A DNA stretch of 64,000 bases from Macrostomum lignano (lineage: Eukaryota), in contig NIVC01000581.1 of NCBI GenBank assembly GCA_002269645.1, positions 310,001 to 374,000 of the forward strand, read 5' to 3'. Position 1 is the stretch's first letter; every line of letters begins with the position of its first letter. Below are positions 1-44,612 of this stretch, one piece after another. A program made the position numbers and the translations under genes. Under the pieces are notes generated by a model that did not search any database, was not told the DNA's origin, and saw only the letters and a program-made list of their open reading frames with translations.

Positions 1-121
1 GATCTCCCAACGGTGGCTGGGCGTATCGCACACCCAAAAACTCCGATATTGTGTTATTGTCCGTGGTCAGCACTGTGCTTCCAACAACTGTGCCATAGCC
101 GCTTACTGAGACATTATAGTT
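1..121 (-). other. Start of COesterase-fold domain 8 (type B), runs off window
   Basis: Hand translation NYNVSVSGYGTVVGSTVLTTDNNTISEFLGVRYAQPPLGD matches the starts of domains 4 and 6. Confidence 0.8.
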
Positions 122-3100
122 CCGAATTGCAGTCCTCGTTCTTCTCGGGATGATCCTGTCAGATTTGGGAGCCTCATTGGTGGTAACGTCAGGCAGAGAC
201 AGCGCGGACTTCCGTCGCAGTGGTTCGGGCGACTTCTTTGCACTTTTCACCAGGCCATCGACATACGGCAGATCATAGTACCAGACTCCGCAGCGTTGAA
301 TAGTGCTGGCTCCTTCGGTGGCATTGTAGCGATCACTATAGAGGTTGTTGTAGTCGGCGTAGTCCCATACTCCGAGTTTTGTTGTCTGCCAGGATGGATC
401 TAAAGTGTTTGGGACGTGGTTTGCATTATTCATCTTGCATATCATGAAATAATTTGAATTTTTAAGAGACATTTGTATTTTTTACTCACTTGGCTTGCCG
501 TCCTTTACGAACTTGACAATGTCGCGCATCATGCGAACGGAAAGGTTTCTGTGCGATTCTGGGTAGGCGATGCCAGTGCCCGCCGGAATGCCAAAGAAGT
601 AGCGCAGATCGGCCTGATGGTCTGAGCCCAGTTGCATTCGATCAGTATCCCATGGGTCTCGAGCAGTAAACACGTACAGGTAGGTCTCAGTGCTGGTCTG
701 GTTCCGGCCCTTCTGCACGATTGTCTCCCACACAGGGCAAAGGAAATAGCGATCTCCGACTGCCTGGCCCCAGGTGTTAAGCAGAGTCTGCTTGTCGGGA
801 CTGCCGATGTAGTCGTCGAAGTACAGATTGATAAAGTCCGTGCCAGTTTCGCTCAGTTTGCGAGGGAATCGCGGGTGGTAAGGGAAAGTTCGGTTGAGAA
901 GCTGAAAATGAATTACGGTTCCAATCATGAATTTTAACCGTTTGGTATTTGTAGAAAACGCACTAAAATTTGGTCAAATTACTATTTACCTGCGTGTAGG
1001 TTTCTGCATCAATGTCAGCGAGGGTTAGATTCTGGTTCACCAGGGCTTGTTCAACATAGCTTCCACCGGTGTCAGTTGTGAATCCCATTAGCATTTCAGT
1101 GTTTGACGAGCCTTGCTCCTGGTGCCTCCAAGCCTCAAGTGGGTCGCGGTTGTTGAAGAAGGCACTATCCAGCACAGGTCTAAACTCTAGAGTGAGAAGT
1201 AGCTGCAGGAATGGAGTTTGAGCGTCCACAATATTTTTAGTATCCAGAGTTTTAAGGCAGGTGATGGCCTCGGAGATATTAGTACTTGGGCAGCCAAGCG
1301 CGAGGGACACGAATGCAAGGTTCAGCTCTCGGGTGTTTTCCTTGCCTCCGTTGCTGTCGTACCAGGCCATTGGCATTGTTGGCGAGCCACCCATCATGAT
1401 CGCTCGCTTGAAATTCTGCTTCGATGCGGTGATGCTGTGGAATCCAACGGCTGCTGCTCCGATGCCGTGGCCAGCTAGTGCAATGTTCTCGGGGTCTCCA
1501 CCGAACATGCTGATGTACCTCTTCACCTCGTTCAACGCCAGACGCTGATCCAACAAACCCATGTTTCCAGGAAGCTCGCTATCGCTAAGATATAGGAAGC
1601 CGAATGCGCCCAGCCGGTAGGCCACAGTGACTAGAACAACATCCTCGTACGAGAGAAGATTCTCACCGAACAGTTCGCGCTGACTGATGGAGCCGGATTC
1701 AAAGTTCCCGCCGTGAAGGTAAACAATCACTGGGTAGTTGCGTCCTTGAACTGCACCGGGCGTCCAGATGTTTAGGTACAGACAGTCTTCAGAGTATGCT
1801 ACACCAAGAGTGCGATTGTCTTGTGGACAAGCATGAGGCAGCGTTTGAGCAATAAATGTGCCCGGACTGTTGGGAATAGCTCTCGGCGGAGCAAATCGGA
1901 GGTCTCCGACAGGAGGTTCCGCATACGGCACGCCCAGAAATCGAGAGATGTTCTTCATTCCGTTTGGTGTGAGAACGCGATGTCCGACGATTGAAAGGTC
2001 AGGAGTGATGGAAGCCGTGGCATTTCCGACAACCGTGCCGTCTGGTCCGATTGGAGGCCGCGTTGGTGGTGCAGTTGGTGGCGGCGTGGTGCCCGTGTCA
2101 TTCAAGCTGTTCACATACGGCAGTATCTCGTCCCAGAATCCGCACTGCTGTCGCCTGTAACCGTCCTTGTACATCCTTGGTGGTAGGTTGTCAGCATCCA
2201 GAAGCAGATGCGATTTGTTGGACGCGTCGTACCGTTCCCAAGGTATCGCGCCGCCAGGCTCGCCGTTTCTAGCAAAATTGACGATCGACTGCATAATTTC
2301 GTCGGACAGCTCGCGCTGCTCATCAGGTCTTGCAGGGCCCGGGCTTGACGGATTGCCGAACACGTAGAACGCGTCTTCGACTAAAATTTATTAATGGACG
2401 TGCAAGAGAATTTGAACACGAAAAGTTAAACTTCTTTACCCGGTATCATTTTTAATATAAAAAACTGCTTAAAAATTTGTAATTAGCAGTGATAATTTTT
2501 ATTTTGTAGTATTCTATCATGAAAGTACATTCTTGTAGATTTTTCTTATGTACTTCAGTATACGGTTACATTTGTTATTTTGGTTTTGGGAAATTACCAT
2601 TCTTGAAGATACCATGATAGTAAATATCTAAAATTCATTCATATGCTTTATAATCCGAAGGTTCAACTCACAAAGGCTAGCGTGCAGCAGTGGAAGTTCT
2701 GACTCCTCATATTCATTGCCCTCTGTGAACAGATAGTTGTAGACTGGCTGGCTGGAAGCTTTGGAGTAGGCGTCAAGGAACTTGTTGTTAGCGCATGTAT
2801 AGTAGCGGTCACTGATGGCGAGGCCCAGGTCTCTGATATCACGCTCGAAATTGCCCTGTCCGTTGTACTGCATGAAGTGGTTGCGCAGGCCATTTCTGCC
2901 GGCAGTCGTCATTGACTTCGGAAACCGCGGAAAATACTCGGTCATGCGCTGTAGAGTCTGAAAAACAGAAAGAAAATTCGAAAGTTACAGATCACGAAAT
3001 AATGTTAATTAATATGGTTAAGCTCAAGTCAAGTACAAACCTGGAGATAAACAGCATGAGTGAAGTTCCCCGGTGTCAAAAGAAGACCGTCAGTGGCTCT

Positions 3101-6100
3101 CTCCAGAAGGAAATTTCCAGGTCGGTCCACTCCACCAAAGATCATGGGCACCTGCATCAGTGAGCTCGGGTTTACAGTCCAAGGATCGCTTGAAATGAAA
3201 TCACCATCGACCACTGGTGGAAACTCAATTCGCTGGAACAACTGTTGGAACACTCCCTGCTGCTCATTGATCTCATTGGCAGACAGGCCGCGAATGCAAG
3301 ACAGCAGCTCAGCCCCCTGGCAGCGGAGCCTGGTTCGAACAAAAGTCACTTGCAACTCTCGCGCCTCCTCGGTATCGTTCGTCAGCGGGTAGGACATGTA
3401 CGGAGAGCCGGTCATGAGGACGACCTGGTGAAACCGGTTCTGCCCTGGCCTGGCCATATGGTAACCGATCGACACGGCGCCAGCCTCCACGCCCATCAGG
3501 GTGATGCGGTTCTTGTTGCCGCCGAAGCTCTCAATGTTATCGGCCACCCACTGCAAGGCCATCTCCTGATCCCACAGACCGTAGTTTCCGATCACCTCCT
3601 TGTTGTCGAGGGACAAGAAGCCAAACACACCTAAACGGTAGTTGATGGTAACCACGACTGCGTCATGGTGATCCAGGATCATGCTTCCCTGCCAACGATC
3701 TTCGCCAACGCTTCCAACTTCAAAGAAACCTCCGTGAAGGAAAACTAGCACAGGCAGATTGGTGACATCTCTACCCTCTCGCTTCGGAGTCCAGACGTTG
3801 AGATAGAGGCAGTCTTCGGACATTGTGAAATTGTAATTCTGCATCTGCATACAAGCTGGCGGCATCTGTTGTGCAATGTGCTGTGTATCTGCAAAAAATA
3901 TTAGAATTAGACAGTCTGTAAACCTACACGCTTGATTATTTATAAACCATAATAAAGGCTTGAAATCCCACCTGATGTTGTGGAAGGCTTAACCGGCTTA
4001 GCCAACCGAAGATTTCCTACGGGTGGCTGTGCGAACGGAATTCCAAGGAAGTGAGACATTGTGACATTTGAGATTGTTCTTATGGTGTGTCCACGAACGT
4101 GACCGAAGTCAGGAACCTGAATAGTGTAATTCGCAATGACTTCGTGCACATTGAACGGTGTGGCGCGCTGAGGCTGCAAGTTGGGTGTCCTGGCCGGCCG
4201 CTCGCCACTGCTAGCGAGCAGTTTGACAAAGTTTTCTTCCTCGCTTGCTGTCGTAGTCGGGACCAGCGTGTTCACGTAGGGCAGCTCATTCTTCCAGACC
4301 GGGCAGCGGCCACTGTTTAGACCGAAGCCGTCGCCAACCATGACTGAGATCACGTTTCCAGCACCGCCTGAGTCTGGCAGAACAACGTCGTACAGCAGGA
4401 AGTCTGAGTTTTGGAAGCTCGTTCGGTTCCAGCGGGCAGGAGCTAAAGAAAAAACAGACTTAGTTTTAGAGCAAGCACAAAATGAAGCACCAAAAAACAG
4501 TAACAAAACCATTAAATGATCCTAGGAAAGCTCACCTGATCCACCAATATACTGAACAAAGTCGTCCATCATCAGTCGAGACAGATCCTTGTGAACCTCC
4601 GGATATCCATCTAGCCTCATGGGCTCGCCAAACAGGTAGCGGATGTCGCCCCAGTGGTCAGCGCCGATCAGGCCCTCCTGCGCCCTGAACGGGTCCTCCA
4701 CATCTAGGTAGTACATGTGAATGTCGTGCTGCTTGTCCCTCAGAAGGTCGCTTGTGGCCTCCCAGATGGGGCACAGGAAATTGAAGTCACCCATCGCCCT
4801 CGACCAGATGGCCTTGATCCGCTCGTTGTAGTCGTAGTAGTTCCACTCGGTGAGGGCCAGCTTGAGGAATTGAATTCCAGTAGCCGTGTTCCTTTCCGGG
4901 AAGCGAGGGAAGTAGTTAAACTGCAGCTCCACGATCTGAAAGGTATTCAAGAAAAGGTATGGCATCGATGCTTCTTTCGTTTAATAAAGGATTTTTGGAT
5001 TTTATAGTGCAAGCTGTTTCACCTTTTATAGTGAAACAGAGGTATGGTAAGTTGCTCACCCTTTCGAAAATAGTTCGGTTCAGCGACTCCCAGGAAATGT
5101 TCCTTCGAGCCAGCGACTGCTCGATGTAGTAGCGACCAGAGTCTGAGCCCACGCCTGTCATGTACGGCTTGTCCATCTCGCCCTTCCACCAGCGATCATA
5201 TGGATGGGTGTGGTTGAAAAACGACTGGTTGAACACGGGCAGGAACACCAAGTGATCTCTCGAGTGCTGCATGTTAAGCTGTTCCGTCATGATCCTATCC
5301 AATGTAAGGTTTCTCAGACATTCCAAAACCGAATCAAGTGGGCCTCTTGCGCAGTCAAGCTGAACATTGACAAAATGCTCGCTATCTTCAAGAACCTCTT
5401 GGGTCGAGCTCGACCAAGCCAGCGGCATCGACGGAGATCCGCCCATCAAGATCATCCGGTCGAAGAAGTCCTTCGAATCCGTGACAGCGTGGAAGCCAGC
5501 CGACGCGGCGTCCGTCCCGTGACCCATCAGAGTAATCTGCGTCCTGCTGCCTCCAAAGAAGGGGATCACTCTTTGGATGAAGTCGAGAGCAAGCCGTTGG
5601 TCCATCAGACCGAAGTTTCCGGGCAGCTTCTCGTCGTCCAGGAACAGGAAGCCGAGCGCGCCCAGTCGGTAGTTGACCGTGATGAGAATGACGTCCTCGT
5701 TCTCGAGAAGCTGCTCACCTCGATACTCTGGCAGACTGTTAGCTCCACTCGTGTAGTTGCCGCCATGCAGGAACACTGCTGTTGGATAACTTCTGGACGT
5801 GTCGCGCGGTGCCCAAATGTTCAGGTACAGACAATCCTCAGACATGCTTCCTCCTGGAACTGGATTGATGGTTTGTGGACAGGCCGGCGGCATTGTCTTT
5901 GCTGTGTAGTTGCCACCCTTTGGTAATGAAGCCTGGCTCCACCGAGTGAGTGGCATTTCCGCGTAGGGCAGACCCAGGAATCGCTTGATGATCTTTCCGT
6001 TTGGCAGTCGCACCAAGTCTCCGGCGATGCTGATCCTGTTTTGCGTTCTTCCGAGGTCGATTTCAATGATGATTTCCTCAATAATGCCGCCATCGGGACC

Positions 6101-9100
6101 GATCGGAGGTCTGGTCGGCGGCGGCGCAGTATCGTTCAGGCTGTTGACGAACGGTAAAGTGTGGTCCCAGAAGCCACACTCCTGTCTCCTGTACCCATCA
6201 GGATACATCGTCGGAGGGAGATGGTCGGCGTCGAGCAGCAGATGAGACTTCTTCTCAGAGTCGTACGGGTCCCATTTCAAAAGGTCAGATGGACTGCCGG
6301 TTCGGGCAAACTGAACGATGGCGTGCATGATGGCGTCGGACAGCCGCCGCTGTTGGTCTGGCACAATTGGACCGGGGCTGGAGGGATTGCCAAACACATA
6401 GAATGCGTCCTCGACTGAAAGGGAAAAATTAATAAGTGTTGCAGATTCTTAAGTTTTTTAAGTTTACGAGCTTAAGCAGTTTGACTTTAAAATGCTGTGA
6501 GAGAAAACGAAAATCAATACTGCAGCTTTCGACTCACAAAGACTTGCATGCTGCAGGGGAAGCTCTGTGTCTCCCTTGTATTCCTTGCCCTCAGTGAACA
6601 GATAATTGTAAACAGGCTTGCCCGAGGCTTTGGAGTACGCATCAAGGAACTTGTTATTCGCGCAGGTGAAGTAGCGATCGCTGAGCGCTAGTCCTAGGTC
6701 TCTGAGATCCCGCTCAAAATTGCCCTGTCCATTGTACTGCATGAAGTGGTTGCGCAGGCCCGTCCGCCCGGACACAGTCATGCTCTTGGGGTATCTCGGG
6801 AAGAATTCGTTCATACTTTGCAGAATCTAAAAGTTCAGAGCACCGACTTGTTCTTTTGGATTGAATTAAAGTGTGCGGTTTTTGCGACGTCCTGAGCAAA
6901 AAATATTAAAATTATGAGTAGGAGCTATTTAAGCGCATCCATTACTTTTTATTTAATGATACGTAAGAAAACTTAGAAAAAATTTGTCTTTATAGGTAAA
7001 AAATACGTGAGCAAAATTCCTGACACAATTTAATTTCCAGATTGCATAAAACTTTAAAGAGAATTACTCACCGTTAAGTACGCGTTATGACTAAAGTTCT
7101 CTGGCACAAGGATCTCAGTGTCCACCAGTCTTTCGATAAACGTGTTTCCAGGTCGGTCCACTCCTCCAAAGATCATGGGCACCTGCATCAGTGTGCTCGG
7201 GTCCATCGTCCAAGGATCCAACCTGATGAAGTCACCATCAATAATGGGTGGGAATTCAAGCCGCTGGAACAGTTGCTGGAACACGTCCTGCTGCTCATTA
7301 ATTGAATCAGCCGGTTGACTCCGAATGCACTCTAGAGCTTCAGCTGGGTCGACTGGGCATCGCAATCTTCGCAAAAAGCTGTATTGCAGGTCACGAACTT
7401 CCTCAATGTCATCCGACAGCGGGTAGGACATGTACGGAGAGCCGGTCATGAGGACGACCTGGTGAAACCGGTTCTGCTTTGGCCTGGCCATGTGGTAACC
7501 GATCGACACGGCGCCAGCCTCCACGCCCATCAGGGTGATGCGGTTCTTGTTGCCGCCGAAGCTCTCAATGTTATCGGCCACCCACTGCAAAGCCATCTCC
7601 TGATCCCACAGACCGTAGTTTCCGATCACCTCCTTGTTGTCGAGTGACAGGAAGCCGAAAGCTCCAAGACGATAGTTCATGGTAACCACGACTGCATCGT
7701 AGTGATCCAAGATCATGCTTCCCTGCCAGCGATCCTCGCTAATACCTCCGACTTCAAAAAAGCCTCCATGAATAAAAACAAGCACGGAGATGTCATTCAC
7801 GTTCCTGCCAGCGCGTCTTGGAGTCCAAATATTGAGGTAGAGACAATCCTCAGACATGTTCCGGTTGTGATGCTCTCTCTGGATGCACATTGGCGGCATT
7901 GTCAGTGCCAAATGCTTTGAGTCTGGAATTGAGATATAAAAATGTTTAGGTTAAATGCATTGTTTTATATGGAGTAACTATTATAAATTTGGCTCAAAAT
8001 TAATGAAAATGTGCACCTGATGTTGTATGTGGCTTCACTGGCTTTGCCAATCGACGATTTCCGACAGGCGGCTGCGCATACCGAACTCCGAGAAACTGGG
8101 ACATGGTGATATTGTTCGACAGAGTCATGATGGTCTGCCCCGTCACCTTGCCGAAGCCGGGAACGTCCACAGTATAGTTCGACACGACTTCGTAGAGATT
8201 AAACTCCGATTCGTCTTTTACGCTGCTGGTCTTTCCGATTGCTGGTCGCTTTCTGCTTGCACTGACGGTTATTTTCGAAGTCTCTTCTTCCTGGAAGGGG
8301 GCGCTGACAAACGATTTGACGTAGGGCAGCTCGTTTTTCCAGAGCGGGCACCGGCCAGTGTTCAGGCCGAAACCGTCCGGCACCATGACAGAGACCAGGT
8401 TTCCCGGACCGCCGGAGTCCGTTTGCAGGATGTCGTACAGTAGAAAGTCTGACGTCTCCTGGCTTGTTGCATTCCAGTGAGATGGTGCTGCAAATTGGGA
8501 AGACAGCTTGCTCTGTACATGAAGTTAATAATCTGTACAGCACTTAATAATTTGCCACTAAAGACAAATTTCGAGCACGAGCAATAGTAATTTACTGTAA
8601 AACTGTTGCATGTTATTCTTACCAGAGTACCCGCCAGTGGCTTAACTTAATCGACATATTTTTTCGTTTTGTTTTTACAATATTTGATCAGTTGATGTTT
8701 TGGCAATGCTTGGTACAGATTGCCTCCTAAAATATTCTATTTTTCGGTCTTTTTATTGCTGATTATAAGGATCACAAAGGAAAACTACGAGTTGAGAGTT
8801 TGTGAGATTAAAAATACTGTTTTTAAATAATTTGAGCAAAACTGAAAACTAATCAATACGAGGGTAGCTCGAATAAAGATGTGTATAAAGAAGCTTTTAA
8901 AGTAATCCTAGTATTAATAGCTTTATCAGAGGACTATCAAGTGGTCATTTAAACAAACTCTACAGAACAGCATGAACGATATGTCTGATTTTTTAACTTT
9001 TCTTGCATATTGGTAGTCAATAGCTAGCTCGTACAAAAATATTTTTTCAAACTTTGATTAAAACACTGTTTAAAACTACGCTACGAGTACGATGCTTAAA

Positions 9101-12100
9101 TTGAATTTATGGCCAACCAAGCATTTAAGATGGACACAATATGCATTTCGGTTTAAAAGTCAGTGGTCCAGGTTTTCTTTACTCCTATCTTCTGTTTTTC
9201 TTCTTATGCAGAAATTCTGCTGACGAAAGTCTTTCTTTGAAATAGGAAATAATTGAAAATAAAATCGTACTACGCTTCCCTAACGTTTTTTGGCTCTCAC
9301 CTGATCCCCCAATGTACTGGACAAAGTCGTGCATCATCAGTCGGGAAAGGTTCTTGTGAACCTCCGGGTACAAATCCTTCCTGAGCGGCTCGCCAAACAG
9401 GTAGCGGATGTCGCCCCAGTGGTCAGCACCGATCAGATCCTCCTGTACCCGCAACGGGTCCTCCACATCTATGTAGTACATGTGAATGTCGTGCTGTTTG
9501 GCCCTCAGTAGGTCGCTCGTGGCCTCCCAGATGGGGCACAGAAAGTTAAAGTCACCCATCGCCCTGGACCAGATAGCCTTGATCCGCTTGTTGTAGTCGT
9601 AGTAGTTCCACTCAGTGAGGGCCAGCTTGAGGAATTGAATTCCGGTAGCCGTGTTCCTCTCCGGGAAGCGGGGGAAGTAGTTAAACTGCAGCTCCACGAT
9701 CTGGAACGTTTGCCATTTGCATTTCAATCATATTCTCAATGAGTTATTATGTTTTCCGTTATTTTAAATAGCTCAAAACAGTTAGTTTTTCTTACCCTTT
9801 CGAAAATAGTTCGGTTCAGCGACTCCCAGGAGATGTTCCGTCGAGCCAGCGACTGCTCGATGTAGTAGCGACCAGAGTCTGAGCCCACGCCTGTCATGTA
9901 CGGCTTGTCCATCTCGCCCTTGGACCAAGCGTCGTACGGGTGCGTGTAGTTAAAAAACGACTGATTGAACACGGGCAGGAATACCAAGTGATCTCTCGAG
10001 TGCTGCATGTTCAGCTGTTCCGTCATGATCTTATCCAATGTAAGATTTCTCAGACACTCCAAAACCGAATCAAGTGGGCCTCTTGCGCATTCGAGTTGAA
10101 CATTGACAAAATGCTCGCTATCTTCAAGAACCTTCTGAGTCGAGCTCGACCAAGCCAGCGGCATCGACGGAGATCCGCCCATCAAGATCATCCGGTCGAA
10201 GAAGTCCTTCGAATCCGTGACAGCATGGAAGCCGGCCGACGCGGCGTCCGTCCCGTGACCCATCAGAGTGATCTGCGTCCTGCTGCCTCCAAAAAAGGGA
10301 ATCACTCTTTGGATGAAGTCGAGAGCGAGCCGTTGGTCCATCAGACCGAAGTTTCCGGGCAGCTTCTCGTCGTCCAGGAACAGGAAGCCGAGCGCGCCCA
10401 GTCGGTAGTTGACGGTGATGAGAATAACGTCCTCGTTCTCGAGAAGCTGCTCACCTCGATACTCTGGCAGACTGTTAGCTCCACTCGTGTAGTTCCCACC
10501 GTGCAGGAACACTACTGTCGGGTACGTCGTTGAAGTATCGTTTGGAAAAAAGACGTTTATGTACAGACAATCCTCAGACATGCTTCTTTCCGGAACTGGA
10601 TTGATGGTTTGCGGACAGGCTGGTGGCATAGACTTCGCTGTGTAGTTGCCACCCTTCGGAAATGAAGCGTAGCTCCACCGAGTGAGAGGCATTTCCGCAT
10701 AGGGCAGACCCAGGAATCGCTTGATGATCTTTCCGTTTGCTAGTCGAACCACGTCTCCGGCGATGCTGATCCTGTTTTGCGTTCTTCCGAGGTCGATTTC
10801 AATGATGATTTCATCGATAATTTCTCCCTCTGGTCCGATCGGAGGCCTGGTTGGTTCCGGCGGCTCCTTCAGCTCATTGACGTAGGGAAGAACCTCCTGC
10901 CAGAATCCGCAGTCGTTAATCCGGAAGCCCCAATTTACCGACACATTGTGCACCTGCGCATCGAGCACAAGGTAGGGCTTTAGATTTGCCGTGTACTCCC
11001 ACCACAGGTCGAGACTGTTTTCAGGATTGGGATTTCCTGTCTTGGCGAAGTGCGTGAATAATTCGATCATCTTTTCGGACAGACTTTTCTGTTCATCGTT
11101 CCACTCAGGTCCTTGCAAAGGATTTCCGAAGAGATAGAAGGTGTCCTCGGCTGTAGAGTAGATTTGTGAATATATATTGATTTATTTGGCTTTTTTGGAT
11201 TGATTTTTTTTCGGCTGCTAATAAAAATGCAATAAAATGGCACCTACACAAGCTTGCTCCATCGGATGTAATATTTTCAACATTGGACTTCTCGGAGAAC
11301 ACATAGTGATATAGGAATGCATCAAGCGGATGCCGCTTAGAGATCACTTGCTGCAGGTATTCGTTGTTTCCGCAGGTGTAGAAGCGGTCACTATAGGCCT
11401 CACTAAGGCTGTCAATCAGCACCTGCCTATGCAGAAGCGGCGGTCGGTATTGCATCCCGATCAGCGTGGCTCCGGGCTGCTTCAGCTCCTTAGGTAGCCT
11501 CGGGTTGTAGTATGATGCGTTAACGATGTTCTGCAAGTGTTTATGGTTGCATAGTGAATTATTCATCTACGAGTACTTATAAAACTCACCCACATATTTT
11601 AGAGGCCTTACCTGCAGCACTTCATCATAAGAAATGTTTGCCAAGTCCAGCTCGCCGAAGCGAATCCTGCGGTTGATGATCTCATTTCCCGGCCTGTCGA
11701 CAAATCCGACGATCATGGGCACCTGGGACATGTCGCCCTGCTGCACCGAATGCCACGGGTCCTCCTTGAGAAAGTCTCCGTCGACTGTGACCAGGGCCTC
11801 CGGACCGAACTTGTTGGCGAACTCGTTAGTGTAGACACTGTTGATATCCGACACGGACTTGGCCCGCATGCAAGCCAACTGGGCGTCCGTGGTGCTGTTG
11901 TTGCATCCCATTAGCTGCAGGTATTGTTCGATGCGCATGCGGGTGCCATCGGTGTCGTTGTTCAGGGGATAGGCCATAGACGGACTGCCCGTCTGGAGAA
12001 TCACCCTGGAGATCCGGGTCTCGTTGCGGATCAGGTGGTAGCCAATGGACACGGCTCCGGCGTCGTCGCCCACGGCGGTGATGAGACTGGCGTTGCCACC

Positions 12101-15100
12101 GAAGTGGTGAATATTCGCCTCCACCCATTTGAGCGCCATCTCCTGATCGAAGAGGCCAAAGTTTCCGCGGCTGCCCTCGGCCGAGAAGGGCAGGAATCCC
12201 AGAACTCCCAGTCGGTAGCCGATGGTAACCACGACGACGTCCTGCAGCTCGACAATCTTCTCGCCACTCCGGTACGGATCGTTGATGCCTCCGACTTCGA
12301 AGAAGCCACCGTGAATGTACACCAGTACGGGGACCTGCTGAGACTCATTGGCTGTCAGGCTAGGTCTCGGAGTCCAGATGTTGAGGTAGAGGCAGTCCTC
12401 GTCCTCTTCCAAGGTCGTATTCCACGCCTGCGGACACGCCTTAGGCATCGTTTGCGCATCGATGGTAGCTGCAAAGTAAATTGAAGAAATAAGAATTATG
12501 CGATGCTCAACAGGAGTGCTTTTGGAATTGAGGAAAGGACTTCTACAGCTTGCAGAAGGGGCAGAAGTCGGAACTATCTGGAAGATTCTGACATTGGAAG
12601 GTCGCTGATAAAATCTAAAAGTGCATTTTTCTGTTTTGAGCGTAAATCGAAAGGCTTTAATAAATTTACTTGAAGACCCAGTGCCATTTCAAACTAATGA
12701 TGGAGTCATTAAGAGCCTGTAGCCCAAAACTACGAGCGTACCTTCCATACTACCGGTGATAAATTAATTGAAGCCAGCATGCTTTTATCCAATGCGGCTT
12801 TACAAGTTGTTGGTATTGTGATTTTTATTTGTGATTTTTCCTAAGAAATTTATTTCGACGAATTTTTCTCGTTTTGAAAGTGTCTTGTGACACACTAAAA
12901 GTGGGGGTCAAACCTCGCGCAGGCAGACTGAGACAGTTGTCTGGCTTGAGTCAGCCTCAGCCACACGCCGTCCTCTGCACAGACCTTCTGAACTGGTTTG
13001 TGCTGCCAGCACTAACCGGGTTTTGTGTACACCGCCAACCCCCCGGCTTGCGCCCACCCCCCTCCCTCGGCAGGGTTTTTATGCCTGCGGGCCAGCTGAG
13101 TTTGTGTCGCTGCGCGCTTGAAAATTTTCTAACATTGGAGCAAAATTCAAATGTTCTAAGAAGTATACTCAGCAACATTGAAAAGTCGCCACTCTATGCG
13201 CCAGTGAGCAATTTCTCTTGGACCATTCTGAAATAAAAGATGCGAGAAAACTCATCGGGGTAGCTTTAATCCGTCCAACCCTCGCACACAGCTCCCCCAC
13301 TTCATTTCTCAACTCAAGTCTGCCGCGGCGTATTTAAGTTGCGTCACTCGCAAAGATTGAGAGACTACCTGCACTCTCAAAAGCGGCGATCACAGACGGA
13401 TCTGTGATGGCGACTTTTCGATGTTGCTGAGTATATATACTGCTAGTGGTCCTTGATTAATATTGCACAGGTACATGAACAACTGTTCATATTGCACAGG
13501 TACATGAACAACTGTTCATATTGCACAGGTACATGAACTACTGTTAATATTGCACAGGTACATGAACAACTGTTAATATTGCACAGGTACATGGACAACT
13601 GTTAATATTGCACAGGTACATGAACAACGGTTAATATTGCACAGGTACATGAACAACTGTTAATATTGCACAGGTACATGAACAACTGTTAATATTGCAC
13701 AGGTACATGAACAACTGTTAATATTGCACAGGTACATGAACAACTGTTAATATTGCACAGGTACATGAACAACTGAAGCAGCGGGACGCTACACATGAAA
13801 ATCCTCCAAATTTTGAGATATGGCGAGATAGGAAGATATAGGAAATATGAGATATAGGAAGATAGGAAATAATTGCTAGCAATTATTTAAAAGCATTTTG
13901 GCAGTAGAAGGCTTTCGTTGGATGTGAGACTAAGCGCAATTTTTTAGTCTGCAAACTGTTTTATAAAAAAATGAGCTGGCTTATTCTGCTGAATCGTCAG
14001 AATATTTTTTCTCATCTTTGCTTGTGGGTTTGACTTCCAGACCGAAAACCTTGATCTGCCTCTTTTCTTGCAGCTGCAATGTTTAATGTAACTCACCGTT
14101 TGCAATGTCCTTCAGAGCCGGCTTGGCAAATCGCAGATCGCCGGTTGGCGGCTGCGCGTACGGAATGCCGAGGAATCGCTCAATCTCCTTCCCGTTCGCG
14201 GAGAGCCGGTGCCCCCTGACAGTGGCGCCGACCTCGGTGAGCTCCACAGTGGCATTGTCAATGATTTGCGCGGATGTGGGCTGGAAATTGTTGGCGGCAG
14301 CCTCTTGCTGCGGCTTCGAGCGGGCCGGCGCCGCACCGATGGTGCTGCCGTCCAGCAGAAACGGGTCCTGCCGCAGCGGGTTCATCGGCTTCGCAGAGTC
14401 GCCCGGCACGAGGCGGTTCACGAAGCTGAGAGTGTCGTACCACCAGCGGCAACGGCGGATGGCGAAGCCGCCAGTTAAGTCGTAGAGGCCGGGGTCCTGC
14501 ACCGGCAGGTAGCTGTTGTAGTTCCAGTCCCCGGCGATCACGCTGCGCCAGTTGTTGTCTGTGTGTGTGAAATCCCGGCGGTTGCCATTTAGCGCTGGGT
14601 TTGATTGGGCTGAGAGTCCGCGGGTTATTTGTCATAGGAATGCAAAGGAGGCAATGAGAGTGGGTGTGAGTTGGATTGCCCGCTGTGCTGTAGGAATGGC
14701 AGGAAATTCAGTTCATTTTGAGAAAGTGAAGGATTTGAAATTTTCTGGAATGGGCTGTTCCCTTTGAAATTCATATTCTAAACAGAAAATTTCCTCACTC
14801 GGCCTTCCGGTGGTGACAAAGTTGGCCAGATCCTCCATCATGCGCTTGGCCAGCTCGTTGTGCTCGCTCGGGTACGGGAGGCCAGGGCCGTCCGGGACGC
14901 CAAGGAAGTAGCGCACATCGTTGACGTGTCCGGGCGCCTCGTTGTCCCTAAACGGGTCCGGAGCACCGAAGTAGTACAGGTAGGCGTTCATGTCCTCTCC
15001 CGGCTGCGGCCTGTCATCATCGAACAGGGCGTAGAGGGTCGGGCAGAGAAAGCTGAAGTCGCCCAGAGCCTCGGACCATTTTTTCAGCAGCAGCTCTTTG

Positions 15101-16942
15101 TTCTGGGCGTCGTTCCACTCGGTGTGCGACAGCTGGAGGAATTTCAGCCCGGTGTCGTCCAGCTCGGTGGGGAAGCGGGGGTAGTGCACGAACTGCTGGC
15201 GCAGGATCTGCGGCGGGACGGGCGAGGTGGGGTGAGGATGAGGCTTATTGATTTACAAGTAAACGAGCAATGGAAAATAAATGTGAAAATCAACATAGCT
15301 CGTAGATTAAGTTAGATTAAATTCTTCCAACGCGTTTCGGTCCGACAAGGGCCATCTTCAGGGTCTGATTTTCACTCACTCAGGGTATTTTCACTCACTC
15401 AGGGTATTTTCACTCACTCAGGGTATTTTCACTTACTCAGGGTATTTTCACTCACGCAACAACTTTTATAAGAGATAAATAGAGAACAAATGTTTACTGT
15501 AGAATGTTCAGAATGTTCTCTGGGCAGAATGTTCAGAGTAAGTGAGCAGAGATTGCGAGTACAATGATCGGGTTGTGCCTTCACTTAGAATACCTTTAGT
15601 AAATGGCCCGCACCACTGTGAGAAAGTTGAATGTTCAGATTTGGTTTCTGGTTTTTAATGTACATGGATTCAAGTATATTGAGCCTAAAGTCAGTCCTAC
15701 AACGATCAATAATTTAAAACTGCTTAGTTTGCCCAATGTCGCAACAACTGTTGCAACAGAGCAGGTGGTCTTGGATAGCCGGATGAACAATATCCGCGGG
15801 GACATTCGCCTAGCATAGGAAAAGCTACTCACCTCGTAGTACACATCGCGGTTGAGGATGTCGGTGGTTAGGTTGCGAGTGCGCAGCGAGTTGAGGGCGA
15901 ACTCGATACCGGAGTCAGCGGTGACGCCCATCAGCAAAGTGACGTTCTTACGGCGCTCGCCCCAAGTTATTAGCGGGTCCATAAAGTTAAAGAACTCTTT
16001 GTCCAGTACGGGCATGAACTCGAGCGAAATGTAGAGCTTCTCGTAGTTCTTCTGCTCTTCGATCAGCTTCTCAATGGAGATGTCATTTCGCAGGCATTCG
16101 ATCACCTCTTGAAGCTTGCCCTCCCCACGAGCGCAGTTCAGCTGAATGTTCGCGAAGCGCTCACTAACGCCCCTCACTGCATCGATGTCGTTCGACCAGA
16201 CCAGGGGCATGAGGTGCGAGCCGCCCATCATCACCGCACGGGTGACCGGGACATCTTGAGTGGCGATGTGGAACCCGACAGAAGCGGAGCCGGTTCCGTG
16301 GCCCGCCAAAGTGATTCTGTTCGGGTCTCCGCCGAAAGAACTTATCATACTAGTGATTGTCTTCAGAGCCAGGCGCTGATCCAACAGGCCGAAGTTACCT
16401 GGCATCAGTGTCGAATCCAGGTAGAGAAAGCCGGTGGCGCCCAGTCGGTAGTTGATGGTCACAAAGACGATGTTCTGATTTCGCACGAGGGTCTCGCCCT
16501 GGTACTCCGGCTCAGCGATGCCGCCAGTCTCGAAGCGTCCACCGTGGATGTAGACCAGCACAGGGTACTTGGTACCCGAGGTGGTGTCAGGCGACCAGAT
16601 GTTCATGTACAGGCAGTCCTCGCTGTACGGCAGGCTCTTCGTGGTGTTGTCCTGCGGGCACAGCGGAGGCTGCTTTTTGGCATCGATTTGGACGTCCCTG
16701 CTGAAGTTCAGCGCTTCGGGCTTGGCGAACCGCCGGATTCCGGTGGGCGGCTGAGCGTACGGAATGCTGAGGAATCGGTGAATTTCTTTCGACTCATTTA
16801 CTCCGGAGGCGTTCACCTTCAAGCCATTGAACTCGTAGCCTTCGTAGATCACTTGAACGGTTCCGATGATTGATTCGGCATTGAAGCCGGCGCAGAAGGC
16901 CAGCAGCAGGGCTGCCGCCAGCGTTGCTTGGAGCGGCCTCAT
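1..16942 (-). CDS. Giant secreted multi-domain carboxylesterase/cholinesterase-like (alpha/beta-hydrolase) protein, >=8 tandem pseudo-enzyme domains, 3'-partial
   Basis: Exons read by hand: 16942-15833, 15207-14799, 14558-14097, 12468-11612, 11530-11248, 11150-9796, 9700-9301, 8487-8017, 7922-7072, 6826-6538, 6414-5060, 4935-4536, 4442-3972, 3888-3041, 2957-2672, 2380-990, 901-490, 399-<1. All 17 introns are GT..AG and phase-compatible. Total 12,049 nt, about 4,016 aa, with no stop. N-terminus MRPLQATLAAALLLAFCAG is signal-peptide-like. Each domain has FLG(I/V/L)(P/R)(Y/F)AxxP, EDCLY(L/M/I)N(I/V), HGG and GN(F/Y/M)GL.DQ. Confidence 0.9.
251..2024 (-). other. COesterase-fold domain 7 (type A), elbow GHGIG
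   Basis: FLGVPYAEPP, SEDCLYLNIW, ALAGHGIGAAAVGFH (1458-1472), DHQADLRYFFG, RCGVW (hand translation of 399-251). Confidence 0.85.
2103..4131 (-). other. COesterase-fold domain 6 (type B, paralog of domain 4), elbow GVEAG
   Basis: FLGIPFAQPP, SEDCLYLNVW, GVEAG at 3479-3493, QCGFW. Confidence 0.85.
4267..6075 (-). other. COesterase-fold domain 5 (type A, near copy of domain 3), elbow GHGTD
   Basis: Near-identical protein and DNA to domain 3; elbow at 5510-5524. Confidence 0.85.
6137..8180 (-). other. COesterase-fold domain 4 (type B), elbow GVEAG
   Basis: FLGVRYAQPP, SEDCLYLNIW, TLMGVEAGAVSIGYH (7513-7527), FEDAFYVFGNP, ECGFW. Confidence 0.85.
8315..10810 (-). other. COesterase-fold domain 3 (type A), elbow GHGTD
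   Basis: FLGLPYAEMP, SEDCLYINVF, TLMGHGTDAASAGFH (10246-10260), DHWGDIRYLFG, RCPLW. Confidence 0.85.
13166..13433. mobile_element. 268-bp Tc1/mariner-type MITE in intron 3
   Basis: TIR TACTCAGCAACATTGAAAAGTCGCC at 13166 and its reverse complement (1 mismatch) ending at 13433; TA on both flanks. Confidence 0.8.
13461..13775. repeat. 29-bp minisatellite, ~11 copies
   Basis: unit tattgcacaggtacatgaacaactgtt(a/c)a. Confidence 0.95.
15322..15365 (-). ncRNA. Minimal type I hammerhead-ribozyme-like motif (Penelope-type), probably degenerate
   Basis: Minus strand reads CC-CTGAAGA-TGGCCCTTGTCGGACC-GAAA-CGCG-TT-GGAAGAA: CUGANGA and GAAA cores, a GG..CC stem II, a palindromic ACGCGT stem III and a GUU triplet. 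Stem I pairs only weakly. Confidence 0.5.
15371..15455. repeat. 19-bp tandem repeat, ~4 copies
   Basis: unit tcactcactcagggtattt. Confidence 0.9.
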
Positions 16943-18622
16943 TCTCCCAGTGGGTTCGAGGTCGCCAAAAAACTGGTTCGCAGTTCGGACTCGCGGCTTC
17001 GGCGACATTTATCAGCTGCTGTTGGGGTTTTATCGCGGCTGCCATGACGACGGAACAACAAATAGGCCGGGCGGTAAACGCCTCTCGCTGCTAGCTGGCA
17101 CTGGTCGAGGCCAGGCCAGGTGAATTTTGGCTGTCTGAAAATTATTTTGAGCGTGCGTCAACGCATTGCAGAGAGGGGTAAGCGGCACAGCCACCGGCAC
17201 TTGAACTTTTTGACTGGTTGCCCGAGAGGGGCAGCTCTGATCACCTGCTGCTCTGCTGATAGCGCCAGCCACATAATGCCACTGGAATCTTTTATCTTCA
17301 CTTTCGAGTTTTCTATCTGCAACTTGAATGCATTGCTTGAAAAAGTGGCGCTATGGTTTTTATCACCCGCGGGCGAAACCAGCGACTTCACCCACTGGCC
17401 TCACCACGAAAGTTAAAAATCAAAATGAAGATTAGAAGAAGCTCGTTTGGACAAAAAGAGATCGCAGAAACGGCTTTCAGTTTCAGCAAATAGTTACCGT
17501 TGCTATGGTAAGATTTTCTTACGTGTATCGAGAATGGTGGGCGACAGGTGAAGCAAAGTGAAGTACAGCAACACAAGCAAGCGAGCCCAGAAGTACATGG
17601 AGCTGAACGATTCAATTCGGGGCTGTTCGACCCATCGCTGGATGCTGCAAGATTGGCTTGAAGATCGCTGCAATAAGCATCAAAAGCTACTCGTATAATT
17701 CTGGAATCCCCTACCCGCCACCCTAATATACATTGCGTGTACATTTGCATGCACTTTAAAGTATAAAGCAGTACCGAAGACCAACGACGATGCAAATACG
17801 TTGCGACTCGCTGCACAGCATTAAATTTGTCTAATCAATGAAAATGCGCATTCTTCGGCTTTTAGTCGAGTCGAAAGTTCAAAATCGTCTCCAAGGCAAT
17901 TCCTATATTTACAGGCAGCAGTCGCGTCTTATCAGCTCGAAAGTCTCCTCTTCTTCTCGATCCGACGCCGATCTCGGCAGCTTTTTGCTGTCTCCTTATC
18001 TTCCCACCGCGCCCTACTGCTATTTGAGATCATTCTAGAATCTGCAACTGAACACTGATAAGACGGTTCGATCAGCTAAGGAGTTCGCACGAGCTTCTTT
18101 TAATCAGAGCTGCCATGCAGTTTGCCATGAAGATGCGCAGAAATTTTCTTTTGACTAAGTCAAGTCAGTAGAACAGGCATTTTCAAATTGAAAAAAAGTT
18201 TTTTCCACGCAAAACCCGATCGCTAGGATTCGAATCGTGGCGTTTTTGTGTTTTAGGAATCAAAAAACTCCAAGAAGGCAGACAACCCAAATACGCGATT
18301 ACGATTGCACAATTTTATAAGCACCAATTCAAAATTCCACGTCAGCGCAGACAAACACCAGAAAATCGAGTGAGTAACGTTTGAGTAGCGTTTCAAACGG
18401 CGAGTGGTATTATTTACATGTACAAGTACTTCTCTTGAAACGTTAAGTCCAGTTTTAAGACTACATGTAGCGAGGGGGGCTACTTAAAAGAGAGAGAATC
18501 TTAGTTTGAATCAGACGTGCGCTTTAATACGCGTAAAGTTATATTTAGTGATATAAAATGAAAGCAACCAAGCCCTTTATCTTCATCGGAGCTGTACATG
18601 TGTATGAATGGGGAAAGAATAA

Positions 18623-19421
18623 CACTCAGCAACATTGAAAAGTTTTCACCTTCGCGCCAGCCGTGTATATTTAGAGTTTCAAAACTGATTTTTGTCGCCG
18701 ACTTGTGCCATAGACGATTGATGATTTCGTCAACACGCACTTGGGCCATAGACAAAAACTTGGGTCATAGACGCCAGACAGGTCGAAGGAAACAGTCACA
18801 TGGAGCAGACAGCAGCAGCTTACAAGAGTCTAGCTAAAATCCACGTTCGCAACCGAACGCAATGCTTCGCCAAATTACCGACCTGGAACGAGCGCGCGCC
18901 ATTGGCATGCTGGACGCTGCGACGTCCATCCGAGCTGTTGCTCGCCAAATTGGACGGTCACACACAGCAATCCGCAAACTGCAGATCAAGTGCAGAGAAA
19001 CGGGCAGCGTGGCCGGCGCATCTGAAAGAGCTGAGGCACCTGCGAACCTTGCGCTTTCCGTCCCGATCACCGGACATGAATCCCATAGAGCACGTTTGGG
19101 GTTACCTGAAGCGCTCGATTCGCCGCAAAACGTTGCCAAATGCGCGAATCACTGTCTACTGCATGGCAACAACTACCGCAAGATTTTCTGCGACGCCTGG
19201 TTCTGGGGATTCCCTGGAGAGTGAGCGCTGCTATACGCGTTACTGACCCTGTTCTGGGTAAGTTGTCACCCATGCTCGCGTACTTTGTTTCTTTGCTGTT
19301 CCTTTGCTTCGTTCGAATCCGGATTATATATCTGTCTATGGCTCAAACCACGAATATCTCCACCCACCAAAACGTTGACCCTTCGCGCGCTAGGGTGGAA
19401 ACTTTTCAATGTTGCTGAGTG
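18623..19421 (+). mobile_element. Internally deleted Tc1-like DNA transposon
   Basis: TIRs CACTCAGCAACATTGAAAAGTTT(T/C)CACC at 18623 and ending 19421 (TA on the right, AA on the left). N-terminal HTH fragment RQITDLERARAIGML..AVARQIGRSHTAIRKL lies directly against the C-terminal RSPDMNPIEHVWGYLK fragment in another frame. The central DD region is missing. Confidence 0.85.
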
Positions 19422-26711: not shown

Positions 26712-29333
<2,622 letters not shown>

Positions 29334-37341: not shown

Positions 37342-38991
37342 ATGGCAAGCTTGTCTTACGAAAACCCACCATTCTGGGTAGTTCAAGGCACAGAAACTAA
37401 CAATAGACAATGCTATGCAATATCTGTAAGGAGAATTGTGAAACCGTCACCAGCGCCTACACAGCAATTCGCGAAAGTGTTGGTGAACGTATCGTCCCAC
37501 AACACACGACACACAAAGCCTCAGCTGCTACAGGCGGAACTATTAAAGGGCCCGTTCGATAACAAGGAGGCTGCGTCTCGCGCTATGCAGTGTTGTCAAT
37601 TGCCAGACGAAACTTATTGCATCGACTTGGATTGCGATAGTTGCAGCGTGCTGCACCGAAAGATGGCCGTTGTCGAGGAGCAGATGGACAGGCTCAAAAA
37701 CGAGCTTCAAAGCGCCAAAGCGGCAGCATCTGAAAGGCGCGACTTGCTACTGAAGGAGGTGGATGCGCACAAGTCGACGCAGAGGCGCTTGGAGGTGGCT
37801 AATGCTGAGATGGATGACCTGCGCCAAGAAATTGATCGTCTCAGAACGACTGGCGAATCATCCGAATTTCAATCCAACGTTATTCGGATTATGCAAGACT
37901 TTGCCGCTCAAAGCCTTGCAACAAGCCAAACCCCAGCTTCGGTAGCTCCTGCTATTCACGCTTCCCCATCGATCGAGGTCATATCCGAGATTCTGGGAGA
38001 AGACCAACGAGTGCCGCTTCTGGCGTCCGCCCCGAACGTGACTATTACAAGAGAGCAGAAGGCAGCTATTGAGCATGCGGTCGCTGAACTCCGTCGCGAG
38101 CCGGGTGACAAGCAGTTGCGAAAGCTCACCAGACTCCTCATTCGTTCCCTTTTTTCGACCTCGGAATTGTGCGTGACTACCGTGTCTGGCATGGCCAAGA
38201 AGCAGCAAATTCGTATGCCAGCGAATTGTCATATTGTGAGGACAATTACTCAGTTCCTCACAGCTGCTTCTCCTAATCCTCTACCAGACGGTCTTTTCCG
38301 CAATTCATTCAAATATTGCTCGTTGGATGCCCGCCGGAAAAAGAAAAGGATCGATTCTAGTGCGCTAAGAAGCGGCGGGACCGATCAGTCCTCCTCAACC
38401 GAGACGAGTGCGCTAAGAAGCGGCGGGACCGATCAGTCCTCCTCAACCGAGACGAGTGCGCTAAGAAGCGGCGGGACCGATCAGTCCTCCTCAACCGAGA
38501 CGAGTGCGCTAAGAAGCGGCGGGACCGATCAGTCCTCCTCAACCGAGACGAGTGCGCTAAGAAGCGGCGGGACCGATCAGTCCTCCTCAACCGAGACGAG
38601 TGCGCTAAGAAGCGGCGGGACCGATCAGTCCTCCTCAACCGAGACGAGTGCGCTAAGAAGCGGCGGGACCGATCAGTCCTCCTCAACCGAGACGAGTGCG
38701 TTAAGAAGCGGCGGGACCGATCAGTCCTCCTCAACCGAGACGAGTGCGCTAAGAAGCGGCGGGACCGATCAGTCCTCCTCAACCGAGACGAGTGCGTTAA
38801 GAAGCGGCGGGACCGATCAGTCCTCCTCAACCGAGACGAGTGCGCTAAGAAGCGGCGGGACCGATCAGTCCTCCTCAACCAAGACGAGTGCGCTAAGTGG
38901 CGGCGGGACAATAAAAAAAGGGGAGAAGCGAACAAAGCAGCAACCTTCTCAGAGCTCAAAGAGATCAAAGAGAAATGTTCGCGAAACCTAG
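37342..38991 (+). CDS. Transposon accessory ORF3, 549 aa: coiled coil, BEN-domain-like region and 16-aa tandem repeat
   Basis: Heptad region MDRLKNELQSAK..LRQEIDRLR. BEN-like LTRLLIRSLFSTSEL..TVSG..IVRTITQFL..FRNSFKYCSLDARR. Basic C-terminus. Confidence 0.65.
   Translation: MASLSYENPPFWVVQGTETNNRQCYAISVRRIVKPSPAPTQQFAKVLVNVSSHNTRHTKPQLLQAELLKGPFDNKEAASRAMQCCQLPDETYCIDLDCDSCSVLHRKMAVVEEQMDRLKNELQSAKAAASERRDLLLKEVDAHKSTQRRLEVANAEMDDLRQEIDRLRTTGESSEFQSNVIRIMQDFAAQSLATSQTPASVAPAIHASPSIEVISEILGEDQRVPLLASAPNVTITREQKAAIEHAVAELRREPGDKQLRKLTRLLIRSLFSTSELCVTTVSGMAKKQQIRMPANCHIVRTITQFLTAASPNPLPDGLFRNSFKYCSLDARRKKKRIDSSALRSGGTDQSSSTETSALRSGGTDQSSSTETSALRSGGTDQSSSTETSALRSGGTDQSSSTETSALRSGGTDQSSSTETSALRSGGTDQSSSTETSALRSGGTDQSSSTETSALRSGGTDQSSSTETSALRSGGTDQSSSTETSALRSGGTDQSSSTETSALRSGGTDQSSSTKTSALSGGGTIKKGEKRTKQQPSQSSKRSKRNVRET
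38359..38908 (+). repeat. 48-bp coding tandem repeat, 11 full copies (SALRSGGTDQSSSTET)
   Basis: Period 48 from 38359 to 38887, in frame within ORF3. Confidence 0.95.
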
Positions 38992-43922: not shown

Positions 43923-44439
43923 GGAGCACGGATTCGAACTCACGGCTAGCCCGGCACTACCATGGGGGCTGGAAACAGGCGAGAGACTGGGGATCTGAGG
44001 TTGGGGAAGCGAAGTCTGCAGCTCAACTTGAGCAGTCAGGCTTGAGCTCAGCAGGCAGCGGCGCACAGCCCTGCGCTCTCCGCGCTTTTTAGCCGCTTTT
44101 CAACTGTGGGAGGCCCCAGCCAATCAGCCAAGCCGTCGGGAGAGCGCCGCCATCCCGTGCCAACTGGTTGGGAAAAAGAGCCCTTCTGCAGCTCAGGAAA
44201 TTAACCCATGAAAGCTTTTGAATGCAGAAGTAGTAATATTGGTGAGAATGCGAGAGCGAAGCCAGACAGTGTACAAGTGCTTGTACACTGTACACTGTAC
44301 AGTGCTGCTCAAGTGCCTGCTGTTTTTATTACACAAATACATTTTTATTACAACCGACAGCTCAGCCGCAGCTATTGCGCAGCGCGCATCTGAAAGCTGC
44401 CTACGGCTGTTCAGTCCAAGGCCTGGAGTGGGGGCGCCA

Positions 44440-44612
44440 CACACACCCTCAGTTGCCCCAGCTAATGCTGGCACCCATTTTACAGCTGGGTTGAACTGAA
44501 GCTATGTAGAGGTAAGTGGCCTTGCTCAAGGACACTAATTGTTACGAGTAGGTTGAGAATCGAACCCCTGACCGTTCGGTCGTGAGTGCGACGCTCTAAA
44601 CACTGGGCTGCA
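44440..44612 (-). mobile_element. tRNA-derived SINE
   Basis: Minus strand: tRNA-like head cagcccagtgtttagagcgtcgcactc..aggggttcgattctc (B-box GTTCGA), then gtgtccttgagcaaggccacttacc and cccagctgtaaaatgggt, which resemble conserved central SINE domains. Confidence 0.6.

Follow-up and report, generated by a model that had tools for sequence, protein, structure and literature searches.

The gene that fills positions 1-17008 of the minus strand in a 64,000-nucleotide stretch of the Macrostomum lignano genome (contig NIVC01000581.1, positions 310,001 to 374,000; hereafter the window) encodes a protein with seven complete cholinesterase-like domains (Pfam COesterase; D1-D7) and the start of an eighth (D8), in which two subtypes, termed A and B, alternate. 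Every domain retains a disulfide-stabilised cholinesterase fold and lacks the Ser nucleophile and the catalytic acid, and the B domains lack the catalytic His as well. The product is likely to be a very large, secreted, heavily glycosylated extracellular protein built from at least four tandem A-B modules, in which both domains are cholinesterase-fold pseudo-enzymes with a binding or scaffold role. Non-catalytic cholinesterase-like domains are a known kind; what appears to be new is that at least eight stand in one chain and that two differently disabled subtypes are paired. The coordinates of all domains, motifs and exons are listed in Table 1.

The gene model was obtained by joining open reading frames (ORFs) at splice sites, which gave 18 exons separated by introns that are all GT-AG. 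When spliced, the first 17 exons contained 3,905 codons and no stop across 16 introns, and exon 18 kept the frame open to the window edge. Intron phases agreed at all 17 exon junctions. The 5' end of the gene lies at 17008, while the reading frame runs past the window start, with the 3' end beyond it. Most introns measured 81-291 nt, and the three longer ones 625, 813 and 1,628 nt. Minisatellites were observed in intron 3 (13457-13775, 11 copies of a 29-nt unit, 97% matches) and in intron 1 (15368-15455, 4.6 copies of a 19-nt unit, 97% matches). Translation may start at M1 (17008) or at M23, the first residue of a signal peptide that was read directly from the sequence. No Met-led hydrophobic leader was found at the internal domain junctions that were read, so the signal peptide is N-terminal only. 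The junctions from B to A sit within single exons (exons 6, 11 and 16); together with the lone signal peptide, this indicates one polypeptide whose domains are not separate genes.

An exhaustive HMMER search recovered a database protein, P0121, that models the same locus (3,380 residues, 96-98% identical to our spliced model) but is mis-spliced: D5 is left out, as are parts of D3 and D6. It connects D3 at about residue 1500 to the later part of that domain, and passes from the linker between D4 and D5 straight to the end of D5. P0121 extends through the eighth domain up to its elbow, GAEAG, which is visible only in that model; D8 is B-type. Such faults, and the many multi-domain COesterase matches in databases that look like fused genes with intact triads (four GESAG elbows in Lineus, three in Cirrhinus), would be in keeping with an artefact or a decaying tandem array, in which adjacent esterase genes or pseudogenes have been misread as one protein. 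We consider this highly improbable, given that the B-to-A junctions are continuous within exons, the phases match at 17 junctions, a single signal peptide precedes 3,905 codons without a stop, dN/dS (the ratio of nonsynonymous to synonymous divergence) is about 0.15, and an independent M. lignano gene has A fused to B in the same way, with matching intron positions.

The encoded protein carries 57 N-glycosylation sequons, and each domain is acidic (pI 4.8-5.6). The linkers are of two kinds: from A to B they are long and variable (about 45-55 residues), and from B to A they are short, conserved and Pro-rich (TRPPIGPD/EG).

The two subtypes have lost the catalytic apparatus in different ways. 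In the A domains (D1, D3, D5, D7), the nucleophile has changed from Ser to Gly and the acid from Glu to Ser or Thr, with the catalytic His retained. In the B domains, the nucleophile has become Asp (D2) or Glu (D4, D6, D8), and in D2, D4 and D6 the acid Glu is replaced by Pro and the catalytic His by Leu. A first-pass annotation of this DNA, made from the letters alone, had described seven complete domains disabled in two alternating ways, and the description was borne out: every motif it quoted was found in one spliced minus-strand frame, including all elbow motifs, whose span of 1458-16303 runs exactly between the last and first elbows, and all acid-loop motifs in which S, P or T replaces the catalytic acid. 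The S or F of its even-domain motifs SLSED and SLFED is encoded by a codon split at introns 5, 10 and 15.

The annotation had also proposed alignment to cholinesterase structures. In the HMMER alignment of D1 to solved cholinesterases, the catalytic Ser, Glu and His corresponded to Gly, Ser and His, respectively; in D4, Glu fell on the catalytic Ser, and the Glu position held no acid. Both domains are thus without Ser nucleophile and acid. The oxyanion motif HGGG reads HGG followed by R, F or N in all seven domains, with the third Gly lost. In domains of both subtypes the Cys-loop is about 12 residues shorter than that of acetylcholinesterase (AChE), which removes the choline-binding Trp. As the annotation had stated, Cys residues for all three canonical disulfides are kept: the domain alignment showed exactly six Cys per domain at these positions, with the sixth of D7 encoded in the next exon.

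The first-pass annotation had read the catalytic His as kept in odd domains and as Leu in even ones. The first part holds. The second holds in the ungapped A/B domain alignment, which places Leu at this position in even domains, but the gapped HMMER alignment of D4 puts on the catalytic His a His three residues upstream (LQHASL), and D6 is similar (LLHASL). This upstream His is not present in D2 or in the B domains of other M. lignano proteins; it is therefore not conserved, and we treated it as incidental. The same residue enters the proposal that all or some of the domains are still enzymes, with the Asp or Glu of the B elbow acting as nucleophile and the nearby His of D4 and D6 as base. An acidic residue does lie exactly at the elbow in all four B copies and in the M. 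lignano B domains, HMMER can place the D4 His on the catalytic one with D6 sharing the motif, and Asp-nucleophile alpha/beta hydrolases exist (haloalkane dehalogenases, epoxide hydrolases). Residual catalysis is nevertheless quite improbable, because neither D2 nor the two M. lignano B domains have the upstream His, Pro occupies the acid position wherever it can be read in a B domain, the third oxyanion Gly is Phe in B, and the Gly at the A elbow leaves no possible nucleophile there; to our knowledge, there is no COesterase-family enzyme with a Glu nucleophile. These replacements suggest that hydrolase activity has been lost in all domains.

The fold itself was supported by profile, sequence and structure comparisons. 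Tested pieces of D1-D3 and D7 matched Pfam COesterase (PF00135, cut-off 27 bits) with E-values from 1e-7 to 1e-93 (31-315 bits), and the D2 exon piece 11105-11566 alone gave no Pfam match. P0121 contained eight COesterase stretches (2,056 bits) and otherwise just overlapping hydrolase-fold families. The closest sequences to D1 and D4 in the Protein Data Bank (PDB) were cholinesterases (E about 1e-58 to 1e-60, about 30% identity). AlphaFold2 models were made of fragments from D1 and D4 that each lie in a single exon. The D1 exon-1 fragment (350 aa) reached a predicted local distance difference test score (pLDDT) of 91, and its top PDB matches were human AChE and butyrylcholinesterase (BChE) with a template modelling (TM) score of 0.82; the D4 exon-9 fragment (283 aa) reached a pLDDT of 86.7, with AChE and BChE again as top matches (TM about 0.8). 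Human and Torpedo AChE and BChE were among the top structural matches of the two models.

Selection was assessed by comparing domains with the Nei-Gojobori method, and the resulting values, which reflect the mosaic history of the repeat copies, were dN/dS 0.16 with dS 0.37 for D3/D5 and dN/dS 0.15 with dS 1.38 for D4/D6. This comparison between domains, which the first-pass annotation had suggested, thus gave ratios of about 0.15-0.16, which are not neutral. Corresponding introns were about 50% identical, which equals unalignable, and exons 64-90%. The gene is under purifying selection and is not a pseudogene. The earlier proposal that the fold is selected without hydrolase activity therefore stands as regards selection, given the intact ORF, the dN/dS of 0.15-0.16, the diverged introns and the fold models, while the loss of activity is read from the sequence.

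A sliding comparison of the D3-D4 unit (window 5060-11150) with the D5-D6 unit (990-6414) revealed a mosaic of synonymous-site identity. Values were 0.75-0.92 over D3/D5 and up to 0.96 at the B elbow (model residues about 1912-1961), and fell to about 0.38 (saturated) in neighbouring parts of D4/D6. Together with the unalignable introns, this mosaic looks like exon-limited gene conversion between repeat copies. Amino-acid identity in the synonymous-saturated stretches was still 37-69%, which indicates constraint independent of gene conversion. The array grew as a segment delimited by the phase-1 intron at ASL/xED was duplicated, with later gene conversion between copies.

Within the array, the subtypes are well separated. 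In an alignment of the seven domains, identity was 40-42% between A domains (89.5% for D3/D5) and 38-41% between B domains (72% for D4/D6), compared with 28-35% between A and B. Relatives were sought by the exhaustive HMMER search, and the triad positions were extracted from all multi-domain COesterase matches; a word-indexed search with D1-D2 returned nothing above 33% identity and missed the true relatives. In most multi-domain matches each domain retains GESAG, Glu and His, and these proteins may represent neighbouring genes that were fused. Among the top matches whose source was looked up, an A-type followed by a B-type domain occurred only in the M. lignano proteins P0129 (PAA79323.1), P0273 (PAA79327.1), P0132 (A0A1I8I8B3), P0414 and P0415, and the closest homologues with a source looked up were all from M. 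lignano. The first three are two-domain proteins annotated as 'COesterase domain-containing' and are uncharacterised.

P0129 and P0132 were collinear with each A-B unit of the window, with 33-36% identity over about 1,050-1,100 residues. The in-register alignment scored 541-625 bits (D3-D4 and D5-D6 units), compared with about 300 bits and 27% identity for the out-of-register B-A alignment. At the sites covered by their gene models, the B domains of M. lignano carry the Glu, Pro and Leu replacements and the motifs GxEAGA, GGVDxPGN and ASLxxDAxY, and the A domains of the two-domain proteins have Gly at the elbow. P0129 has the full layout of a type I membrane protein, with a signal peptide, the A domain, a poly-Pro linker, the B domain, a mucin-like Thr/Pro stalk, a membrane helix and a cytoplasmic tail. 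Its gene (in sequence L001, from an M. lignano contig) has introns at each of the five positions seen in the window unit, among them the phase-1 intron within ASL/xED, and two additional introns in B.

A neighbour-joining (NJ) tree with 200 bootstraps placed the A domains in one clade (100%) and the B domains in another (92.5%), with the M. lignano domains nested in both in the same order. A and B together with M. lignano single-domain 'GLDAG' proteins received 95.5% support; cholinesterases and an acoel AChE fell outside this clade, the sampled neuroligins were placed elsewhere, and deeper nodes were weak (30-50%). The collinearity, the shared B motifs, the shared introns and the tree together indicate that the A-B pair is an ancestral module. 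The pair is thus an ancient unit that predates its amplification, here to at least four tandem copies. The earlier suggestion of A-B as a unit is upheld in its evolutionary part by the collinear two-domain relatives, the five shared introns and the congruent clades.

The M. lignano single-domain proteins with a GLDAG elbow (Asp for Ser) were P0155, P0181, P0217 and P0407. P0155 and P0181 retain both Glu and His, and form the sister group of the A clade in the tree. In P0407, a mucin-like N-terminus and a membrane helix lie on either side of the domain.

The known non-catalytic cholinesterase-like domains occur as single copies, in neuroligins at synapses, in thyroglobulin in the thyroid and in glutactin in the basement membrane. 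Neuroligins, gliotactin, neurotactin and glutactin resemble the window domains in combining an extracellular cholinesterase fold with the lack of a working triad. The likeness to neuroligins includes the Ser-to-Gly elbow, arthropod neuroligin-like proteins reading GHGTG as D1 does, and the layout of stalk, membrane helix and tail seen in the P0129 paralogue, which however has two domains. Neuroligin-type molecules have a single domain per chain, compared with at least eight in the window protein; most neuroligin-like matches keep Glu and His (pattern G-E-H); and no counterpart of the B type, with its acidic elbow, Pro and Leu, is known among neuroligin-like adhesion molecules. In the NJ tree, the window domains lay outside the clade of sampled neuroligins and grouped with the M. 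lignano single-domain proteins, so the Ser-to-Gly change of A is probably independent of the neuroligin one. The 'neuroligin-type' loss of activity named by the first-pass annotation is thus apt as an analogy for the Gly elbow but not as a statement of kinship.

Neuroligins and other cholinesterase-like adhesion molecules are known non-catalytic members of the family, and the cholinesterase-like (ChEL) domain of thyroglobulin serves in folding and dimerisation rather than catalysis (PMC5943944). Thyroglobulin is also comparable as a giant secreted disulfide-rich glycoprotein with a non-catalytic domain of this fold. It has one ChEL domain after thyroglobulin type-1, -2 and -3 repeats, whereas the window protein has at least eight cholinesterase-fold domains, and Pfam found no type-1, -2 or -3 repeats in the tested pieces or in P0121.

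Acetyl- and butyrylcholinesterases are the nearest solved structures by sequence and fold, and share the three disulfides and the C-terminal CxFW...LP motif. By comparison, the window domains are tandemly repeated, have Ser and Glu replaced (and His in B), read GG-R/F/N in place of the oxyanion GGG, and lack about 12 Cys-loop residues including the choline-binding Trp.

Other multi-domain cholinesterase-like proteins were considered as relatives. The predicted 'acetylcholinesterases' P0124 (A0A0N4ZI24) and P0168 (A0A0N4ZI25) of Parastrongyloides trichosuri, known as predicted gene models, have several cholinesterase-fold domains per protein, with GAEAG or GIESG (Glu) and GIGAG or GIGSG (Gly) elbows in the orders E-G-G-G and G-E, unlike the A-B order of the window. 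They were ruled out, as they form their own clade (100%) away from the A and B clades, and the elbow resemblance is therefore convergent. The uncharacterised P0165 of Parastrongyloides is also among the multi-domain cholinesterase-like proteins. Two-domain proteins of ambulacrarians were ruled out because their triad patterns differ. The multi-domain cholinesterase-like proteins seen in echinoderms and hemichordates (P0135, P0136, P0141, P0143, P0173) are uncharacterised; in several of the ambulacrarian proteins, which measure about 1,180 residues, a domain with an intact triad precedes an inactive one.

By analogy with neuroligin, glutactin and the thyroglobulin ChEL domain, the window protein would not hydrolyse esters and would act as a multivalent binding, adhesion or matrix scaffold. 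The A-B module would be its functional unit. AChE, neuroligin and the thyroglobulin ChEL domain all form dimers through a four-helix bundle (PMC5943944). As a tentative but preferred model, A and B may pack against each other within the chain in the manner of this dimer, and the short Pro-rich B-to-A linkers (TRPPIGPD/EG) would then join the A-B pairs like beads along a stiff string. It is rather doubtful, though conceivable, that four or more such heterodimer beads form a new kind of multivalent extracellular rod in which the conserved Glu-lined remnant pocket of B binds a ligand (a cation, an amine or the side chain of a partner protein); if true, this would be the first alpha/beta-hydrolase pseudo-enzyme 'dimer' hard-wired in one chain and then amplified.

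The first-pass annotation had suggested that the acidic elbow of B could bind cations or cationic ligands. The acidic B pocket is thus central to another proposal, that the protein serves as a stoichiometric sponge or carrier for ligands, whose remnant gorges bind cationic or lipophilic small molecules such as choline esters, amines, metals or toxins, with at least eight copies giving high capacity. This reading would suit the conserved Glu or Asp at the B elbow, the second acidic residue beside the oxyanion strand of the window B domains (HGGFFEVG) and the acidity of all domains (pI 4.8-5.6). We regard it as unlikely, because both subtypes have lost the part of the Cys-loop that carries the choline-binding Trp, the M. 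lignano B domains have Gln in place of the second acidic residue, and the stalked membrane-anchored paralogue better suits a receptor or adhesion role.

Several observations weigh against the reading of the protein as a scaffold of selected A-B modules. Degeneration has gone further in the A domains of the M. lignano paralogues, with HGG lost and the acid and His positions variable, so constraint on A may be looser than on B. Gene conversion inflates the similarity of D3/D5 and, in part, of D4/D6. The intramolecular-dimer idea draws on analogy and linker lengths only. Our literature search found no description of this protein or its M. lignano relatives; nor did it find described a chain of at least eight such domains, two differently disabled subtypes in strict alternation, or the conserved set of Glu, Pro and Leu in B.

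The remainder of the window contained several further features. Just upstream of the gene lies a Tc1/mariner-type transposase remnant (18800-19246, plus strand; Pfam DDE_3, E 5e-7). A p70 S6 kinase-like gene of at least two exons (26766-27996, plus strand) matches Pkinase and is 60-69% identical to flatworm S6 kinases; it shares flatworm-specific words but does not settle the taxon, being 60-70% identical to sequences from many phyla, and its top match, from Opisthorchis, scores high only because that model is internally duplicated. An intact 946-codon ORF (32576-35416, plus strand) matched nothing in Pfam, had no identical entry in the public gene collection, and may belong to a mobile element. 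The C-terminal half of a 549-codon ORF (37342-38991, plus strand) consists of about 11 tandem copies of the 16-residue unit SALRSGGTDQSSSTET, and the opposite strand is also open through the repeat. The region 41500-62200 is GC-rich (54-64% GC), with many short tandem arrays that give long spurious ORFs in several frames on both strands. A 249-nt non-coding repeat (44351-44599, minus strand) that is interrupted by stops in every frame shows 86% identity to L001 2363-2602, on an M. lignano contig, and probably represents an interspersed element common to the genus. Judged from sequence alone, this repeat and the closest homologues make Macrostomum, either M. lignano or a near relative, the probable source of the DNA; a liver fluke, considered on the basis of the S6 kinase, was rejected in view of the repeat. 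A 234-codon ORF (53818-54522, minus strand) has a weak RhoGEF match (E 3e-4, below the Pfam cut-off) and may be an exon of a GEF gene. An Rfam scan of the whole window gave no matches.

Table 1. Domains, motifs, linkers and exons of the minus-strand cholinesterase-like gene (window positions).
Feature	Position	Strand	Details
Signal peptide	16877-16942	-	M23-A44, MRPLQATLAAALLLAFCAGFNA
D1, A-type	14410-17008	-	elbow GHGTG 16289-16303; acid loop GVTADSG 15908-15928
D1, further sites	His loop GHVND 14917-14931; oxyanion IHGGRF 16532-16549	-	
D2, B-type	10870-14409	-	elbow GDDAG 12056-12070; acid loop GFVDRPG 11687-11707; His loop ASL/SED across intron 5
Pro-rich linker motif TRPPIGPEG ahead of D3	10825-10851	-	
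D3, A-type	8309-10869	-	elbow GHGTD 10246-10260; acid loop GVGSDSG 9871-9891; His loop DHWGD 9410-9424
D4, B-type	6137-8308	-	elbow GVEAG 7513-7527; acid loop GGVDRPG 7147-7167; His loop ASL/FED across intron 10
Linker motif TRPPIGPDG at D5	6089-6115	-	
D5, A-type	4264-6136	-	elbow GHGTD 5510-5524; acid loop GVGSDSG 5135-5155; His loop DHWGD 4645-4659
D6, B-type	2103-4263	-	elbow GVEAG 3479-3493; acid loop GGVDRPG 3116-3136; His loop ASL/FED across intron 15
Linker motif TRPPIGPDG at D7	2037-2063	-	
D7, A-type	250 (approximate)-2102	-	elbow GHGIG 1458-1472; acid loop GFTTDTG 1065-1085; His loop DHQAD 608-622
D7 C-terminal tail with sixth Cys, RCGVWYYDLPYV	exon 18, 399 downwards	-	
A-to-B linker and first strands of D8 (...ISEFLGVRYAQPPLGD), cut by window edge	1-249	-	
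Exons 1-9	17008-15833, 15207-14799, 14558-14097, 12468-11612, 11530-11248, 11150-9796, 9700-9301, 8487-8017, 7922-7072	-	
Exons 10-18	6826-6538, 6414-5060, 4935-4536, 4442-3972, 3888-3041, 2957-2672, 2380-990, 901-490, 399-1	-	

The public gene model of this locus needs correction. In the M. lignano proteins described here, the same fold has been disabled in two ways, and the pair has been fixed with conserved order, motifs and intron positions and then, in the window gene, amplified to at least eight domains in one chain. This offers a natural system for asking why a 'dead' esterase pocket is kept, and allows a test of whether the dimer interface of the family can be internalised within one chain. 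As RNA interference, in situ hybridisation and transgenesis exist for M. lignano, a laboratory flatworm, both questions are testable.

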